Origin: Dimorphilus gyrociliatus
Taxonomy: Eukaryota > Animalia > Annelida
Length of the DNA: 64,000 nt
Reading direction: 5' to 3'
Assembly: GCA_904063045.1 (NCBI GenBank)
Contig: CAJFCJ010000007.1
Coordinates: 3,231,404 to 3,295,403, forward strand
Part shown: positions 19,981 through 32,096 of the stretch, piece by piece
Layout: each line of letters begins with the position of its first letter
Numbering within the stretch: the first letter of the stretch is position 1
Notes under the pieces: model-generated
The model's input: only the letters and a program-made list of their open reading frames with translations
The model's database searches: none
What the model was told of the DNA's origin: nothing
Position numbers and translations under genes: made by a program

Positions 19981-22900
19981 TTAATTATCTATAGTTAAAC
20001 TATGTACATCGTATAATAATAAAAAAATTATATATATATTTATATATTTATATAAATAGATATAGAAGGAAACGCTTACCGCAATCTCTTTCATCAGAAG
20101 CGTCTAAACAGTCATCTAAGCCGTTACATTTTAATCTTATGGGAATTATTCTACCGTTTTCACAAACAAACTCTAAATTTATAGATTACAAGTATATTAA
20201 TTGACATATATTATTACGAATATAAAAAATGGTTTACTTGTGAAAGAATATACGAATGTTAGTACATCCGGTGATAATTTTGTAAAAATACTAGGCCTAC
20301 CATAGGTATTACATCGATTAATTGCGGCACTTAGAATACCAACTAAATAGTAGGAGCCAGTCATTCCATTCTTACAAAAAAGGGGACCACCTAAGAAATT
20401 ATTTAACAGGAATTGAACGATAACGGTTTTTTTTGGGTTGAGAAACATTATTATACAGTATTTTTGAAGCTAGTCGAGTACAGACCGCTATCTCCGTGAC
20501 AAGGCGTTACTAAAGCAGATTCGTAGCCCGCGCATAGAGATGAATTATTCTTCTCTAGCCACGGATAGGCTTCTAAGCATTTCCTGTTATTCCAAATCAT
20601 TAATCTAATAGTTCTTAACTTTTCGGAATATTCCTCTAAATTAGATAATCTCCACCCAACCATTTCACAGGCTATTCCCTCAATTGATCCTAATTTCCTT
20701 AAGCAAAGTACTGAATTTATTCCAGCTGGCTCGATAGTTTCTAAAATAGCAATATCATAACCCTGGGCGAATGATGAGTAATTTGGGTGTATTATTACTC
20801 TTTTAATCTTTATATTTTCAATCGTATTGCTATCCTTTCTATTGACAACTAAAATCATATGCCTAATTCTATTCGGACTATGAAATAACTTAATTTACTC
20901 TTCTTCCCGTTCATTTATAAATAAAAATAAACCTTTTATCCATATAAACTTACATAATGCAATGAGCGGCTGTAACGGCGAAATATTGATCAATAAATGT
21001 TGCTGTACAAGAATCCGGCCCACTTTCTTCTAGTAAATGAGGGGCGTCAAAGCTTATCGGTACTGTCCAAGGCCAGTTTATGTCTCTTATTTGACCTTTC
21101 GAAACGATATTCTCGCCACTCTCACCGCACTCTATATTTATATAATAAATATTTGTTTGTTAATATAATAGGTTATTCTTAAATGTATACGTCATATTTA
21201 AGAAAAATAACAATAAATAACAACAATAAAAGAATAAACAAAGAGTACCAGATGGACCGCACTCAAGAATTAATACTTTCTTATCAGGACAATAGGTATC
21301 TACGTTAAAGTATAGGGATTTATTCTCAAAAGTACCGCTGATAGTGACGTAAACATGAGATGAATAAACAATCCAATCAATGTTTTTCATATACCTTTTT
21401 TTTTTTAAAAAAAAAAACAATATCAAGAAAAAAAAAATACTGCAATAACTCAAGGTAAATAATTATAATGTATTTTTTATATCTAGTGTTGTTTCTTACC
21501 CGTTTTTAACCTTCATACATAATTGATCGGCTAATAAAGATGAAATATTCAAATGGCATAACGGTATCCAATCAAATGGATAAGCCTTTATCATAAATAT
21601 ATCTTCATCCGTCGATATTTTAACTATAATGTTGATATTTTATTTATATATGAAAAAAAATTAAGCAATTTGTAAAATGTATTTGCTGTATTTTAGGACA
21701 AAAGCAAAAAACGCCTCTCATCTATTCTTACAACAATTTTGTTCATCAGAACCATCTGCGCAATCGACTTTACGATCACATTCTCCGGAAATAGGAATGC
21801 ATTGTGTATTTTTACACTGAAATTCCCCTCTGCTACATACACTACAGCTTTTTTCATCCCAACCGGATATACAATCATCAACCCCGTCGCATATCAATTC
21901 ATGTGGTATACAATCTCCATTCGGGCATTTAAATCCACCCTTGGAGCATTTTTTGTCTTAATTAAATAAATACTCTTTATTTATGAGTTATTTATATATA
22001 TATTAGAATATTGATCATTTTTTTACCGCAATTTTTCTCGTCGTCTCCATCGTGACAGTCTCTGTGCTCGTCACAAACTCTATAACGATCTATACATATT
22101 CCACTTTTGCACTTATACTCGTCTTTCGAACAGTTGCATAAGATTTCATCAAGAAAATTTCCGCAGGTGTTTATTCTGTCGCAAACATATTTATTTTCAA
22201 TACATTGACCATTACCACAGTCAAATTTATCATTGCAGCTTCCGGTATTGGGACATATTCCTCTCGAAAGAGATAAACCGTCTAGGGCCATATCAATTGC
22301 TGGCAATTTCCAGCTGTAGCCAAGAAACACAATGGTATCAGTAGCACTTAAAGATATATTCAAAATGGACAAATTCCATTTTTGACCCCTATCCGGTTTT
22401 GCTAACCAAAGATCAATTGATTTAGAATGATTACGTAATATGTATAATTTCAAGCCACTGGGAACTGTTCCACTATAATAAAGTATAATTAAAGTATTAG
22501 ATATATTATTTATAGGAATACTAAACACCTGAGAAAATAATAGAATCTAAAGCAAAAGTCTTGCGTTTCATTAATTAAAATGCTCTTTGAAGCATTTAAG
22601 TGCAGTTTGGCCGTTTTAATTTGAGGCTGATTAACGCCATTTTTACCCATTGATCCATCTAAATAATAGTAGCTATAGCCATACTTTCTAGTTGGGTAAG
22701 ATATTGGACCAGGATAATAAGTTCTATCGGATTTTTCAATCCATTTATAATGGGAATAATCGTTATTTTTATCAAACGTTATCCACCAGCTATTAGATGC
22801 ATCTACTTTACAATCTAATTATTTTTAATATGATTTAATAGCAAAACTCTAATTAATTATTTCTAAGAAAGTTAAAGATTAATACTCAAGTTAATTACAA

Positions 22901-24010
22901 CTGTCGAAGTGCTACAAAACAATTCATCAAACGCGTCCATACAATCGATATTATTATCACAAACTAATCGATTATCAATACATTTCTTACTATTTAAACA
23001 ATTAAATTGTCCTTTTTCACATTTATTAATATCTTCTTCATTATTATAATCGTTAATCGTTTGTAAATATTTTTTATTATTCGAACCAATTTCACATGAT
23101 CTAGGATCAAAATCATTTGGCATAGGCCTACATTCCATAGGCATAATACAAGCTTTAACGATTTCTTTGCAAAATATCGAGCATGGATCGAGTCTTTCCT
23201 TAGAAGTTTTGCAAGATGGAATTCCAGCTGAGCAAATATACTTTAGAGCGTCTTTATGACAATTAGAATCCGGTTTAAGTAGCTTGTACATTTTCTTAAC
23301 TTTCTGTTTTAATTAGGTAATAAATTAAGATAATTGTATATATAAAGATATCTGTGTATTTGTCTGTTTGAACAAAGAGAGAGAGAGAAAGAGAAAGAAA
23401 GAAAGAGAATATAATGTTTATTATTTCGCTTTCCTTATGAATGTCGTTAAAATTATCATCACCCATAATATTTGGAATAATAGTCTTTTTATAGTATTTT
23501 CTACATAAACTGAATAATGGGAATTTCTTGGAAAATGGTATCCTAGTACACTTTGCTAGAAAATTGCAGATTGTTATTTAAATAGCAATTATCTTTTAAG
23601 CTATTAAAACTATATTAAAGTTTTAATGGAAATATATTTTAATACTTTTCCCAAGAACTTGTAATCTAGAAATGTTTATATTAGAAGAAGGAGCAACTGA
23701 AACGATCACTTTAGAAAATCTTGATAAGGTTCGATTGTTAATCCCATAGCTTATACGATTTTCTTTATAATCATCATACCATTCAGATTTATTAATATAA
23801 TCCTTATAATCTATTAAAAATATTTTTCTGTACATTCTTTAATTAATTATTTAGTTATATTAACAAACCTTTATTGAATAATCTTAAGAAGTATTCAATA
23901 TGGATCCTTTGATTAATGTAAAATGATAAACCTATTATTAATGCTATAGCTATTATAACAATACAAATACAAATGATTACAGTAGTTATCGATTTATAAC
24001 CTTTAATCAT
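19981..24010 (-). CDS. Mosaic type II transmembrane serine protease: TM anchor, Frizzled CRD, LDLa, MAM, 4x LDLa, SRCR-like, trypsin-like S1 domain, LDLa
   Basis: The start [31 protein letters not shown] is a signal anchor. The Fz domain has 10 Cys. There are six LDLa repeats (e.g. [35 protein letters not shown]) and a MAM-like segment ([30 protein letters not shown]). The catalytic triad is TAAHC, DIAIL and GDSGGPL (split by an intron). The last mini-exon (DN-stop at 19988-19981) and one donor (see findings) are tentative. Confidence 0.85.
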
Positions 24011-24329
24011 TGTTTATTAATAAATTATTTGAATGTTATTGTAGTGAGTTTAAATTTAAAATGTAAATCTTGACAAACTATAAATATAATTAATTAATTA
24101 TTTCTATTTTTAGAATATTTTTTTTCTCTTTATCAAGACTGTATATAAAGAATCTAAATTACATAGACACAACTTTAATAAACATGGATAAAAACGGAAA
24201 ATAATTACATTTATACCATTTGTAAATATTTATAGACGGTAAGTAAGCCTATTCTGATTACGTAATATTAGTAAAAGAAATAGCGTGATTTTTTGCTAGT
24301 TTTTGCCTGTGTTTACAAGATTGAAATGT

Positions 24330-25933: not shown

Positions 25934-27656
25934 TCAATGGAATAGCACCCATAGAGCAATAACAACATTGGTTGCTACTAATAGAGTGCCAAAAAGTAAT
26001 ATTACGGTAAAAATTGCCAATCTGCTGCTTTTTTCGAGGAATGGACTAAGCACAAGCTCTAAGATAGCCATTAAGATATACTGTCCATCTAAAGCGTAAC
26101 AAGGCACAACATTGAGCAAAGCCAATGCTCCACTTAAGCTGATTACGTAATTAGCAATCGTTTCTAAAACGTAAGGAGCATGCACAGGCACAAAGCTCGA
26201 ACGAGGAGTATAATCGCTTAAAGTCAGTGAATAATGTAAATCTAGAGGATGTCCCAGGAACAGGAGGGGTGCTCTTCTCGTATGAACAATACGTATTAAT
26301 CTCGTTGAATTGTCTAATGACGGTGTAGTACAGAAATTTGGTGAATTTGGTTTATAACAGTCTGACTGGAGTTTGCATGTCTGCCGATCGGAAGTGCTTC
26401 TGGCGGGTAAACAAGCATAATTTGGTTTTACTTTTGTAGTTTTGGTAAAATAGGAAAAGCATAAATGTGTTGAACTGGAGTTCGAACAGCATTCGACATT
26501 TCCATGCATTGTTTTAAGAATATTCGGCTGAGATATATCGTATTGTTTTATAAACTCAGCAGGAACACAGTAGCCAGTAGACTTTTCGGACAATGTTTTC
26601 TCTATACACATTGTCCATTGAGCAATATTACGAACTCTGCAGTTGTTCAAACTAGTTATTTGATCTCCTACCAAAAGACCGCGGGGTCCAGAAACAGCCG
26701 AACCGAGGACGATACTAGTTACAACAACACTGGCATTCGTTGAATAGAAGACTGATAAGATATAGGGCAAAATTAATCGAAAAACCAGGGCCAATATAAC
26801 AAGTACAATATTGTGCCAAACTCCAGCACAATAAATTCGGAGCTGCTTCAGCGGAGACAAATTGGTTAAATGCTCTGTTGATAAGTCAACAAACGCTCCG
26901 GGGTATACGGCCAAAATAAATAGACCAAATCCATGTATTTTGACCTGCTCACTGAGAGAATAAAAAGAATGTTCTTAATTTTAAAATCTACATTTAAATG
27001 TCTTTCAAACATTAAAATTAATTAAATTTCTTCTACTTACCGAACCGCTGCTATTGCGTGGCCAAATTCGTGCAAAACTCCACAAACTAGCAAAGTTAAT
27101 AGGTAATATCCAATTTGGTTAGTTGGAATATTAACACCGGGCATCTGTGTTTGTTTACATTATTATAAACAGAAAGTAAGAGAAACTTTAAACAAAAACT
27201 TACCACAGGAGTTAGAACTTGCTGCTCAACTGGACGCTTTCTCAGTGTATTAACAATCATTAATGTAAGTAATGTAATCGAAATAAAGGTAAAAAAAAGC
27301 GAAATGACAACACCAATTGTAAACCAGACTTTAAGGAAGTTCTTTCTCCATTGACCAAACCTGAGAAATTGCCTGTTTAGGCATGTGCTGTACCATCTTA
27401 TTTGACAAACATAAATAGACAATCCAGTTTTGTGAATAAAGTCTAAGTATTTGCCTTGTGAAGATAAACTTGTCTGAAATTATACATAAATATAAATAAT
27501 TATTCAGACGCACACACATATATATATATATATATATGTATATGTTTATATTATTTATCGAATGCAATCAGGCTTACAAACCTTCAAATATACATCACTT
27601 AAATACAAAATTGCCCAAAAACCCATAAACAAAGCAATAAAACTAGTAGCTATCAT
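25934..27656 (-). CDS. MBTPS2: Membrane-bound transcription factor site-2 protease (M50 intramembrane metalloprotease)
   Basis: Four exons. Motifs MIATSFIALFMGFWAILYLSDVYLK, VLHEFGHAIAAVR (HExxH), AVYPGAFVDL, RIYCAGVWHN, a PDZ-like and Cys-rich insert, and LNVVPCYALDGQ. Confidence 0.96.
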
Positions 27657-28742: not shown

Positions 28743-31700
28743 ATGTCGGATTCAGACGGAGATTCTTCAGCAACGTCCTCTTCAGAAGAGGTAATAGTAA
28801 GAATTTTTATTAAGTTTTTATTTAATAGTATTTGATTCACGATCTTTAGTAAACATGTACTATTTTTCGTTGGGTTCATTTGTATTCGTTTTCTTCCATT
28901 GTTTCCCTAACATAACTATCTTAGCAGAATGGCCGACCACTTCCAAAGCCGAGATCGGACACAGACTATCATGCGAAGATTGTAAGTAAATCATATTTTC
29001 TTGTTTCGCTGTCTAATAAACGATTTATTTTTTAGAAAAGTGATGCCACGAAAAGGTTCGACTTTCTTCTCAAACAAACGGAATTTTTCGCCCATTTTAT
29101 GGCTACTGGATCTCCAACAACAACGAAACCTACCTCCCCTCTGAAGATGCGTTTGGAACAAGTTGCCCAACAAGCCGAAGAAACCAGCACAAGAACTCGA
29201 ACAACATCTTCTTCGGATGATCATCGACATAGAAGAACTGAAAAAGAAGAAGACGAAGAATTACTAAGCGTGGCCGCAAAAACCAACACTCAATCGGGAA
29301 AAGTTACAAGGTTATTTGGAATAATTTCTGAGAAATATTACTAGACTTTTTTTTTTGAAGGTTTGAAGACAGTCCTTCATTTATCGAAGGAGGAAAGATG
29401 AGAGACTATCAGGTTCGTGGATTAAATTGGTTAATCTCTCTTTATGAAAATGGTATAAATGGAATATTGGCGGATGAAATGGGATTGGGAAAAACTCTTC
29501 AAACTATTTCTCTTCTTGGCTATATGAAGCATTACAGAAATGTTGCTTCACCTCACTTAATTATTGCTCCTAAATCAACATTATCAAACTGGATGAATGA
29601 GATAAAACGCTGGTGCCCTTCGATGACAGCAGTTTGCCTAATAGGAAATCAAGAACAAAGATCAGCTATAATACGAGATACACTATTACCAGCCACAGAA
29701 TGGAATATATGTGTAACTTCATATGAAATGATCTTGAGAGAACGAGCTGTTCTTAAAAGATTCAATTGGCGTTACTTAGTTATAGACGAGGCTCACAGAA
29801 TTAAAAATGAGAAATCTAAGCTTTCTGAAATGGTTCGAGAATTTCGTAGTACTAATCGTTTGTTGTTAACTGGAACACCTTTACAAAATAATTTACACGA
29901 ACTGTGGTCTCTTTTAAATTTTCTTTTGCCTGATGTATTCAATTCTTCAGATGACTTTGATGCTTGGTTTAACACCAACAGTATTCAATCTGCTGACCAA
30001 CAGCTAGTTCACCGTCTTCATTCAGTTCTACGACCATTTATGTTAAGAAGAATTAAATTGGATGTAGAGCACGCACTATTGCCAAAGAAAGAAACAAAAA
30101 TTTATATTGGCTTAGCAAAAATGCAAAGAGAATGGTATACAAGGATTTTAATGAAAGACATTGATATAGTTAACGGAGCTACAGGACGATCAGATAAAAT
30201 GAGGTTGTTAAATATTTTGATGCAACTTAGAAAGTGTACAAATCATCCATATCTGTTCGACGGTGCCGAGCCTGGACCTCCTTACACAACTGATAAACAT
30301 ATCGTTGATAATTCCGGGAAAATGATCCTACTAGATAAGTTGTTACCAAAGCTTAAAGAGCAAGATAGTCGTGTTTTAATTTTCAGTCAGATGACAAGAT
30401 TGTTAGACATCTTGGAGGATTATTGCTGTTGGAGAGGATATAATTATTGTCGTCTTGATGGCCAAACGTCACACGACATTAGACAACAACAGATTGATGA
30501 ATATAATGCGCCCAATTCATCTAAATTCATTTTTATGCTTTCAACGAGGGCAGGGGGTTTAGGTATAAATTTGGCAACAGCGGATGTAGTAATTTTGTAC
30601 GATTCAGATTGGAATCCCCAAGCCGATCTGCAAGCCATGGATAGAGCTCATAGAATTGGTCAAAAGAAACAAGTCAGAGTATTCAGATTAATAACAGAAA
30701 ATACCGTTGACGAAAGAATTTGTGAAAGAGCCGAAATGAAATTAAAGTTAGATAGCATTGTTATTCAGCAAGGTCGATTAGTCGACGGAGCTGGTAATAA
30801 ACTAGGAAAAGATGATATGTTAAATATGATTCGTCACGGCGCACAGCATGTCTTCTCTTCGAAAGACAGTGAAATTACTGACGAAGATATTGACAGCCTC
30901 TTAGAACGGGGTGAAAAAAAAACGAAAGAATTGGCTGAAAAACTAAAAGATATGGGAGAAGGGAATTTAAGGTCTCTAACGTTTGATACGGAAGATAATT
31001 ATACCATCTACGAATTCGAAGGCGAAGACTATCGAGCAAAACAAAAGGTTCAGAGTTGGATTGAACCACCGAAACGTGAGAGAAAAGCTAATTACGCAGT
31101 TGATGCGTATTTTAGAGATGCTCTAAGAGTAACGTCAGCCGAACCAAAAGCTCCAAAAGCTCCTCGTCCACCAAAACAACCAATTGTTCATGACTTTCAA
31201 TTTTTTCCGCCAAGGCTCTTTGAACTTCTTGATAAGGAGATATACTACTTCCGAAAAACTGTTGGATACAGAGCTGCTAAAAATCCAGATTTGCCTTCAG
31301 CTGAAGCGGAAAGAGAACGTCGAGATGAACAGAGAAGAATTGACGAGAGTGAACCACTAACAGAGGACGAAGTAGGCGAAAAAGATGAACTATTAAAGCA
31401 AGGTTTCACACACTGGTCCCGCAGAGATTTTCATCAGTTTATTAAAGCAAATGAAAAATACGGGAGAGATGATTTAGATTCTATATCAAAGGAAGTCGAT
31501 GGTAAAACTTCTGAACAGGTCATGGACTATTCTACTGTATTTTGGTCAAGATGCACAGAATTACACGACGTCGAAAAAATTATGGCTCAAATAGAGAGGG
31601 GAGAGGCGAAAATTGCCAGGAAGCATGCTGTTAAAAAAGCCTTAGACAGCAAAATGGAACAATATAAGGCACCTTTCCATCAATTAAGATTACATTATGG

Positions 31701-32096
31701 CACAAATAAAGGAAAAAATTATACTGAAGAAGAGGATAGATTTTTAATTTGTACTTTACACAAACTTGGATTGGAAAAAGACTATGTTTATGATGAACTA
31801 AGAATGTGTATAAGAAATGCGCCCCAGTTTAGGTAAAAATATAGCTAACAATATTTCCTATTTTAAATATTCATAACATTTATTTCAACAGATTTGATTG
31901 GTTTCTAAAATCTCGCACGTCTTCGGAGCTTCAAAGGAGGTGTAATACATTAATTTCGTTGATCGAAAGAGAACACATGGACAGTCAGCCGTCAGATGGA
32001 AAACGTAAAGCTGGTAGTGCAGCTGGACTTCCAGCAAAGAAAGCCAAACATGAGGATTCACCCGCTCCAGCAAAGTCCAAATCAAGAAGAAGATAA
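28743..32096 (+). CDS. SMARCA5: ISWI chromatin-remodelling ATPase (SMARCA5/SMARCA1 family)
   Basis: Exons ~28743-28790, 28928-28981, 29036-29310, 29361-31832 and 31892-32096. Motifs [97 protein letters not shown]. Confidence 0.97.

Follow-up and report, generated by a model that had tools for sequence, protein, structure and literature searches.

A very probable GA-AG intron of the major spliceosome in a corin/enteropeptidase-like protease gene of Dimorphilus gyrociliatus

In the 64,000-nt stretch of Dimorphilus gyrociliatus DNA that was analysed (hereafter the window, within which all positions are numbered), a corin/enteropeptidase-like protease gene on the minus strand, both intact and transcribed, carries in its Frizzled (Fz) domain what is very probably a genuine and constitutively required GA-AG intron of the major (U2-type) spliceosome. 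The coordinates of this intron and its surroundings are collected in Table 1. Here, exon 3 closes on the minus strand with the codons AAC GAC ATT CAT AAG, after which come GAAAGCGAAATAATAAAC, a long CU tract, and TTACCTAATTAAAACAG, while exon 4 opens with the codons AAA GTT AAG AAA ATG TAC. The donor at this boundary, AAG/GAAAGC, agrees with the consensus at positions -2, -1, +1, +3, +4, and +5. In fact, the positions given in the original prediction, which was made from the letters of the DNA (AAG at 23434, A at 23432, and AAAACAG at 23304), all hold on the sequence.

Table 1. Features of the GA-AG intron and its flanking exons (window coordinates).
Feature	Position	Strand	Content or basis
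Upstream acceptor of exon 3	TCTAG at 23556	-	sequence; phases checked exon by exon
Exon 3	23434..23555	-	N-terminal part of Fz cysteine-rich domain; ends in phase 0
Unused in-frame GT donor G/GTGATG	23461..23462	-	sequence; absent from listed contig joints
Donor hairpin containing the exon-intron junction	23398..23436	-	fold compared with shuffles
Non-canonical 5' splice site AAG/GAAAGC	23428..23436	-	G+1 at 23433, A+2 at 23432
GA-AG intron, 130 nt	23304..23433	-	X3 junction, single-copy locus
CU-rich tract, 5' half of intron	23374..23409	-	3' arm of the donor hairpin lies in its first part
Simple repeat flagged in read mapping, at the CU tract	23368-23411
Candidate branch site UUAAU (yUnAy)	23324..23328	-	branch A 23325, 21 nt before 3' splice site; sequence only
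Second candidate branch site CUAAU	23312..23316	-	branch A 23313, only 9 nt before 3' splice site; sequence only
3' splice site AAAACAG/	23304..23310	-	sequence and X3 junction
Exon 4	22886..23303	-	C-terminal Fz part (Cys 3-10), linker, LDL-receptor class A module

As had been foreseen, an unspliced reading runs from exon 3 into the CU tract and comes to a stop, which is the TAA at 23298-23296 (ORF 23296..23466). The frames of exon 3 and exon 4 are offset by one base, and so the removal of 130 nt (1 mod 3) fits. A GT alternative does exist, as was also claimed, and with the 23462/23461 donor joined to the AG at 23301-23300 it would yield PNIM-VKKMY with the loss of 11 residues.

The gene itself was read exon by exon, starting from an ATG at 24010 with a membrane anchor, and all of the more than 13 exons read are open, compatible in phase, and lacking any disabling change. 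The order of the modules is a transmembrane segment, Fz, LDLa, MAM, LDLa repeats, a cysteine-bearing linker, a trypsin-like domain, and at least one further LDLa, of which Fz, Ldl_recept_a, MAM (weakly), and Trypsin were recognized by Pfam scans of single exons. Moreover, the protease domain contains the TAAHC, YDIAIL, and GDSG/GP motifs. We conclude that the gene is an intact and transcribed corin/enteropeptidase-like type II transmembrane serine protease. With corin and enteropeptidase it has in common the N-terminal membrane anchor, the Fz, LDLa, and MAM modules, and the C-terminal trypsin-like domain with its His, Asp, and Ser, though the module order mixes the two, with Fz as in corin and MAM as in enteropeptidase.

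How the Fz domain is distributed over exons 3 and 4 bears directly on the junction. Exon 3 alone gave no Pfam match, whereas exon 4 matches the Fz profile (PF01392) at positions 43-92 from its residue 12 (E 1.2e-4; 23.1 bits, which is below the 32.1-bit cut-off), along with a match to Ldl_recept_a (E 2.3e-7). Since the Fz match in exon 4 begins at profile position 43, positions 1-42 must be supplied by exon 3 together with 11 exon 4 residues, in agreement with the GA junction, and the cysteines are divided as two in exon 3 and eight in exon 4. Residue 6 of exon 4 aligns nine residues before Cys3 of P0119, which is another Fz-LDLa protein; exon 3 showed no meaningful alignment to a sub-range of P0119 without the start of its Fz domain. 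The spacing from PN to Cys3 is 26 residues with the GA junction, 24 in P0119, and 15 with the GT alternative; the spacing of 26 had been called usual for Fz domains. Also lost with the GT alternative would be the GD.. segment, which comes after PN in this protein as in P0119. An exhaustive search with exon 4 returned no orthologue among its best 150 matches, where LDLa repeats dominate, and the matches that combine Fz with LDLa (P0049, P0060, P0119, P0137, and P0018) were set aside as orthologues, as they are without a trypsin domain. A word search with exon 4, under a length filter that removes full-length proteins, gave no match. Two ORFs that flank or span the donor were likewise absent, by exact look-up, from the collection searched.

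Several other features of the gene and its neighbourhood were observed. In the protease domain, ENIVSKG (window 21100-21131, minus strand) is found in place of the R/IVGG of trypsin-like zymogens, so that the cleavage site is not preceded by a basic residue, and a Thr occupies S1 position 189, six residues before the catalytic Ser (window 20484-20560, minus strand). Judged by these residues, ENIVSKG and the Thr at S1 suggest an unusual activation and specificity. An extra LDLa exon (window 20080-20172, minus strand) follows the trypsin-like domain by way of the GT-AG joint 20172->20238, and the gene therefore extends past its protease domain, an unusual arrangement among corin/enteropeptidase-like proteases. 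As for the neighbouring genes, one looks like a site-2 protease with an HEFGH motif (25934-27420, minus strand), and the other like an ISWI/SNF2-type ATPase with an 812-codon exon (29398-31836, plus strand).

The evidence from RNA comes as assembled contigs, which are unstranded and record the presence of joints rather than read counts; such contigs show presence and not absence, and the depth of a single contig is not an isoform ratio. Although no run is recorded as RNA, those that we call X2, X3, and X4 carry exact junctions of the gene and are therefore derived from cDNA. Run X3 belongs to the same study as the genome, and run X2 to another study, which is three years earlier and has a different organism label. 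In these contigs, the gene has the GT..AG joints 20172->20238, 21131->21249, 21956->22027, 22814->22886, and 23810->23869, and hence the claim that the other introns follow the GT-AG rule holds for the five introns of this gene with junction evidence. Among the listed joints, none is at the 23462 GT donor and none at the GC donor, the two options that the original prediction had weighed and disfavoured.

Run X3 is the only one with the GA-AG junction, which it provides by way of a single contig (k-mer depth 15.3) in which 23303 meets 23434 and 130 nt are left out, exactly where the junction had been predicted. The ends of the joint are CT..TC on the plus strand, or GA..AG on the gene strand, and its shorter side is 113 nt long. 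Two letters (AG) fit both sides of the joint, and this overlap also permits the registers GG..CA and AG..AC, though GA..AG alone has G at +1 together with a terminal AG. Whether the contig has letters between the two sides is given as 'not known' in the mapping output; the 2-nt overlap and an arithmetic of depths indicate that the sides directly abut. Here, X3 has a depth of 1.83 in the bin 23316-23449, the very value that the exon part alone would contribute (15.3 x 16/134), and the interior of the intron is thus without an X3 contig. This contig shows that 130 nt are removed from the RNA exactly between AAG/ and /AAA, and that the removal restores the reading frame and with it a probable ten-cysteine Fz domain.

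In run X2, a 910-nt contig (depth 18.2) spans 22930-23810 with zero differences from the assembly and has intron 1 (58 nt) spliced out, while both the 90-nt GT-AG intron at 23556-23645 and the GA intron, with its A at 23432, are retained. As the neighbouring GT-AG intron is kept as well, the GA donor is not singled out by this retention. According to the genome paper, short introns are the ones that D. gyrociliatus removes best (PMC7854359).

A further observation from the same contigs concerns the intron at 21624-21731. Both X2 and X3 contigs skip 66 nt at 21631-21696. Read on the plus strand, the ends of this skip are GT..AG, and on the gene strand CT..AC; the skip sits inside this minus-strand intron and leaves 42 nt holding a TGA. 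The contigs with the 66-nt skip also carry the minus-strand junction 21956->22027, and the sense junction of the intron (T/GTAAGA at 21731 and TTATAG/ at 21624) is not found among the listed joints. The skip could be a spliced antisense RNA that was merged with the sense RNA by unstranded assembly, or else an indel allele.

With regard to the genomic base, run X1 has a contig at depth 218 that may itself underlie the assembly; it spans 21438-24100 with zero differences and has A at 23432. Taken with the A in the X2 contig, this makes a base error in the assembly unlikely, and of the options first put forward for the GA donor, it is genuine splicing that the X3 junction supports. The locus is single-copy in the 77.9-Mb assembly, where the only other match is one of 41 nt to the CU repeat alone, and the joined form is therefore not a retrocopy; an origin in a repeat family is ruled out in the same way. 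Editing of the donor from A to I was rejected by reasoning, as the product would be GG rather than GU.

In the collections, the only related sequences are three assembly contigs from other runs (L014-L016). All three (L014:2039-5590, and also L015 and L016) are collinear with window 25151-20888 at 71-86% nucleotide identity. As judged by its sequence, the orthologue in this relative is a unitary pseudogene and the window copy is intact. Exon 1 of the relative has a stop and a frameshift, exon 2 a 12-residue deletion, the linker of exon 4 a TAA, and exon 5 a stop and a frameshift, and several cysteines are replaced by Tyr, Ser, or Arg; in exon 3 the stops come directly after KKTI, that is, past the conserved part. 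The acceptor in the relative is CAA, versus CAG here, and neither the donor region nor the CU tract can be aligned. Nonetheless, alignment is still possible over the final 30 nt of the intron, from which it follows that the intron is older than the split between the two lineages. That the window copy has no disabling change in the exons read argues that it has been kept by selection.

These observations also bear on whether the assembled donor is the one being spliced. It could be that a hidden GT allele gave rise to the spliced transcripts in X3, and that the assembled GA allele is splice-damaging, an option named in the original prediction, with the unspliced transcripts in X2 being its product. 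Contigs do drop rare variants, and the sole intron-containing RNA contig, from X2, carries GA and is unspliced, but that same contig also keeps the neighbouring canonical intron, and no other letter is seen at 23432 in the runs that cover the site. Similarly, the decayed orthologue in the relative means that constraint on the gene may be weak in the clade, yet the window gene is intact over more than 13 exons as against a copy with many stops. On balance, we regard a hidden GT allele as very unlikely.

When the RNA around the junction is folded, a hairpin is formed that contains the GA donor. It consists of AAGGAAAG and GAAAUAAU paired with AUUAU-UUC and CUUUCUUU, amounting to 16 bp with an AAAC loop, and in it the start of the intron is paired to the stretch at +25 to +36. 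For the 40-nt segment between -4 and +36, the folding energy is -9.1 kcal/mol (z -5.0), with 0 of 200 shuffles folding as well, whereas the same 40-nt window at eight GT donors of the gene gave values of 0 to -6.7 kcal/mol (z -1.2 to +1.8). The hairpin is thus unique among nine donors of this gene. When compared with its shuffles, the whole intron folds slightly better (z -2.45). Pairing of the two ends with each other (first 25 nt against last 40 nt) is weaker than chance, at -3.0 kcal/mol for a shuffle mean of -4.4, and the CU tract as a splint that pairs both splice sites was dismissed as not significant, its pairing with the 3' splice site ranking no higher than the top 8.8% of the windows used as controls. 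As a feature of the sequence the hairpin is real, and for its role we infer that it may mark or present a weak donor, or that it may throttle the access of U1 and so lead to occasional retention and a truncated product.

Another reading, for which a hairpin that would hide the donor from U1 may be cited, is that of a mostly non-productive locus, in which the GA donor is recent and weak, the gene is near loss, splicing is inefficient, and retention in most transcripts gives the truncated ..HKESEII..TES followed by a stop. The intron-retaining contig is the deepest (18.2) among the contigs of the gene in X2, though this is a depth for one contig and as such no measure of isoform ratio, and no X3 contig crosses the interior of the intron. 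Moreover, while the orthologue in the relative is a pseudogene, the exons read here are without a disabling change. We hold this reading to be less likely still than a hidden allele. Least likely of all is a junction made by template switching of the reverse transcriptase or by an error of k-mer assembly, for which the stable hairpin at the start of the interval, the simple CU repeat inside it, the short purine repeats that flank it (GAAAG and AGAAAG), and the restriction of the junction to one contig might be cited, but slippage on GAAAG (23433-23429 and 23304-23300) would produce a 129-nt skip with a broken frame rather than the 130 nt observed in frame, assembly with 31-mers needs junction-spanning reads when the two sides share 2 nt, the depth of the junction contig is like that of the other exonic contigs of the gene, and the same junction had been predicted beforehand from the protein.

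In seeking how a genuine GA-AG intron might be recognized, we searched the whole assembly (77,897,245 bases in 349 contigs) for U1 genes at the Rfam threshold. Of those found, 13 in number, all 13 have ACUUAC at positions 3-8, with A facing +2, and are hence canonical at the base that matters for this donor. A compensating U1 variant was accordingly rejected, as none of the 13 genes has U opposite +2. Three of the U1 genes (L010-L012) differ at position 1 only, where they start with G (GUAC). A divergent U1 at L009:1501-1666 (G000:C3:2401789-2401954, minus strand; 120 bits) was also observed, whose 5' end, AAACUUACUUG, is altered at positions 2 and 9. As regards the class of the intron, a U12-type intron (/RTATCCTT donor and branch TCCTTAAC) was rejected, given that the donor here is GAAAGCGA and the best branch-like match, ATCTTAAT, agrees at 5 of the 8 positions, the intron being rich in AT. 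Birth from a transposon, in the manner of an introner or MITE, was set aside as well, as the intron is single-copy, has ends without pairing, and predates the split from the relative.

For the genuine GA-AG intron that we favour, ordinary U1 would pair with the donor at -2, -1, +1, +3, +4, and +5 and tolerate an A-A mismatch at +2. The G at +1, a yUnAy branch site some 21 nt before the acceptor, and the AG acceptor itself would then see splicing to completion. Recognition by an unchanged U1 has also been proposed for the GA donors of Eurytemora affinis and Oikopleura dioica, which have an AG/GA-A donor context in common (PMC7072748).

GA-AG introns as a kind are already known, and the nearest likeness to the present one is found in the copepod E. 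affinis, whose GA and GG donors are constitutive and needed for the full-length protein, as the present one very probably is (Robertson 2017, PMC5714493; Frey and Pucker 2020, PMC7072748). In E. affinis, the GA donors have an obligate AG at -2/-1 and nearly always an A at +3, and U1 is unchanged (PMC5714493). The same signature and a canonical U1 5' end are seen here, and in both cases gene models are compromised. However, E. affinis is an arthropod in which such donors account for ~12% of introns in curated genes, whereas here there is an annelid with one case in the gene, and no donor hairpin has been described for E. affinis, while one is present here. In the larvaceans O. dioica and Fritillaria borealis (PMC7072748, PMC13326754), a compact genome with short introns accompanies the GA-AG introns, as is the case here, and their removal is the work of the major spliceosome, in which the U1 sequence is conserved. 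Larvaceans show large-scale intron turnover, U2AF paralogues, and altered snRNA m6A; the D. gyrociliatus genome has been described as conservative (PMC7854359).

Another system for comparison is the GA 5' splice site of vertebrate FGFR1-3 (Brackenridge et al. 2003), which, as it is presented in two later papers (PMC5714493, PMC7072748), is used efficiently by the major spliceosome and has otherwise strong complementarity to U1. By the same accounts, the FGFR site is an alternative one, and its use requires a canonical donor that lies six nucleotides upstream. In contrast, the nearest GT here lies 29 nt upstream, which is in the wrong register for the FGFR mechanism as so described, and is unused in the contigs. 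For D. gyrociliatus, the genome paper reports no non-canonical splicing (PMC7854359), and a literature search that combined the species name with non-canonical introns returned no paper describing such introns in this species. What is new in the present case is the donor-specific hairpin, the unpaired intron ends, the lack of a compensating U1, and the dead orthologue.

Taken as a single case, the finding is a modest one, adding one more GA-AG intron with one supporting contig. We nevertheless take seriously, without as yet favouring it, the possibility that the need for U at +2 is relaxed across the lineage of D. gyrociliatus, with many constitutive GA-AG introns, an unchanged U1, and RNA structure that helps at the donor, here in the form of the local hairpin. 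If true, such a relaxation would mean that frequent GA-AG splicing arose independently in animals once more, besides its origins in copepods and larvaceans; Spiralia would have its first example, and for the first time RNA structure would contribute to defining the donor. On a practical level, gene predictors that admit only GT or GC donors cannot model this junction and are bound to shorten the protein, leave out a conserved Fz helix, or break the gene in two, and the same failure would apply to any other GA-AG intron in the genome. Should such introns turn out to be frequent, an annelid with a conservative genome would offer a tractable third system for how an A at +2 is tolerated without a change in U1.
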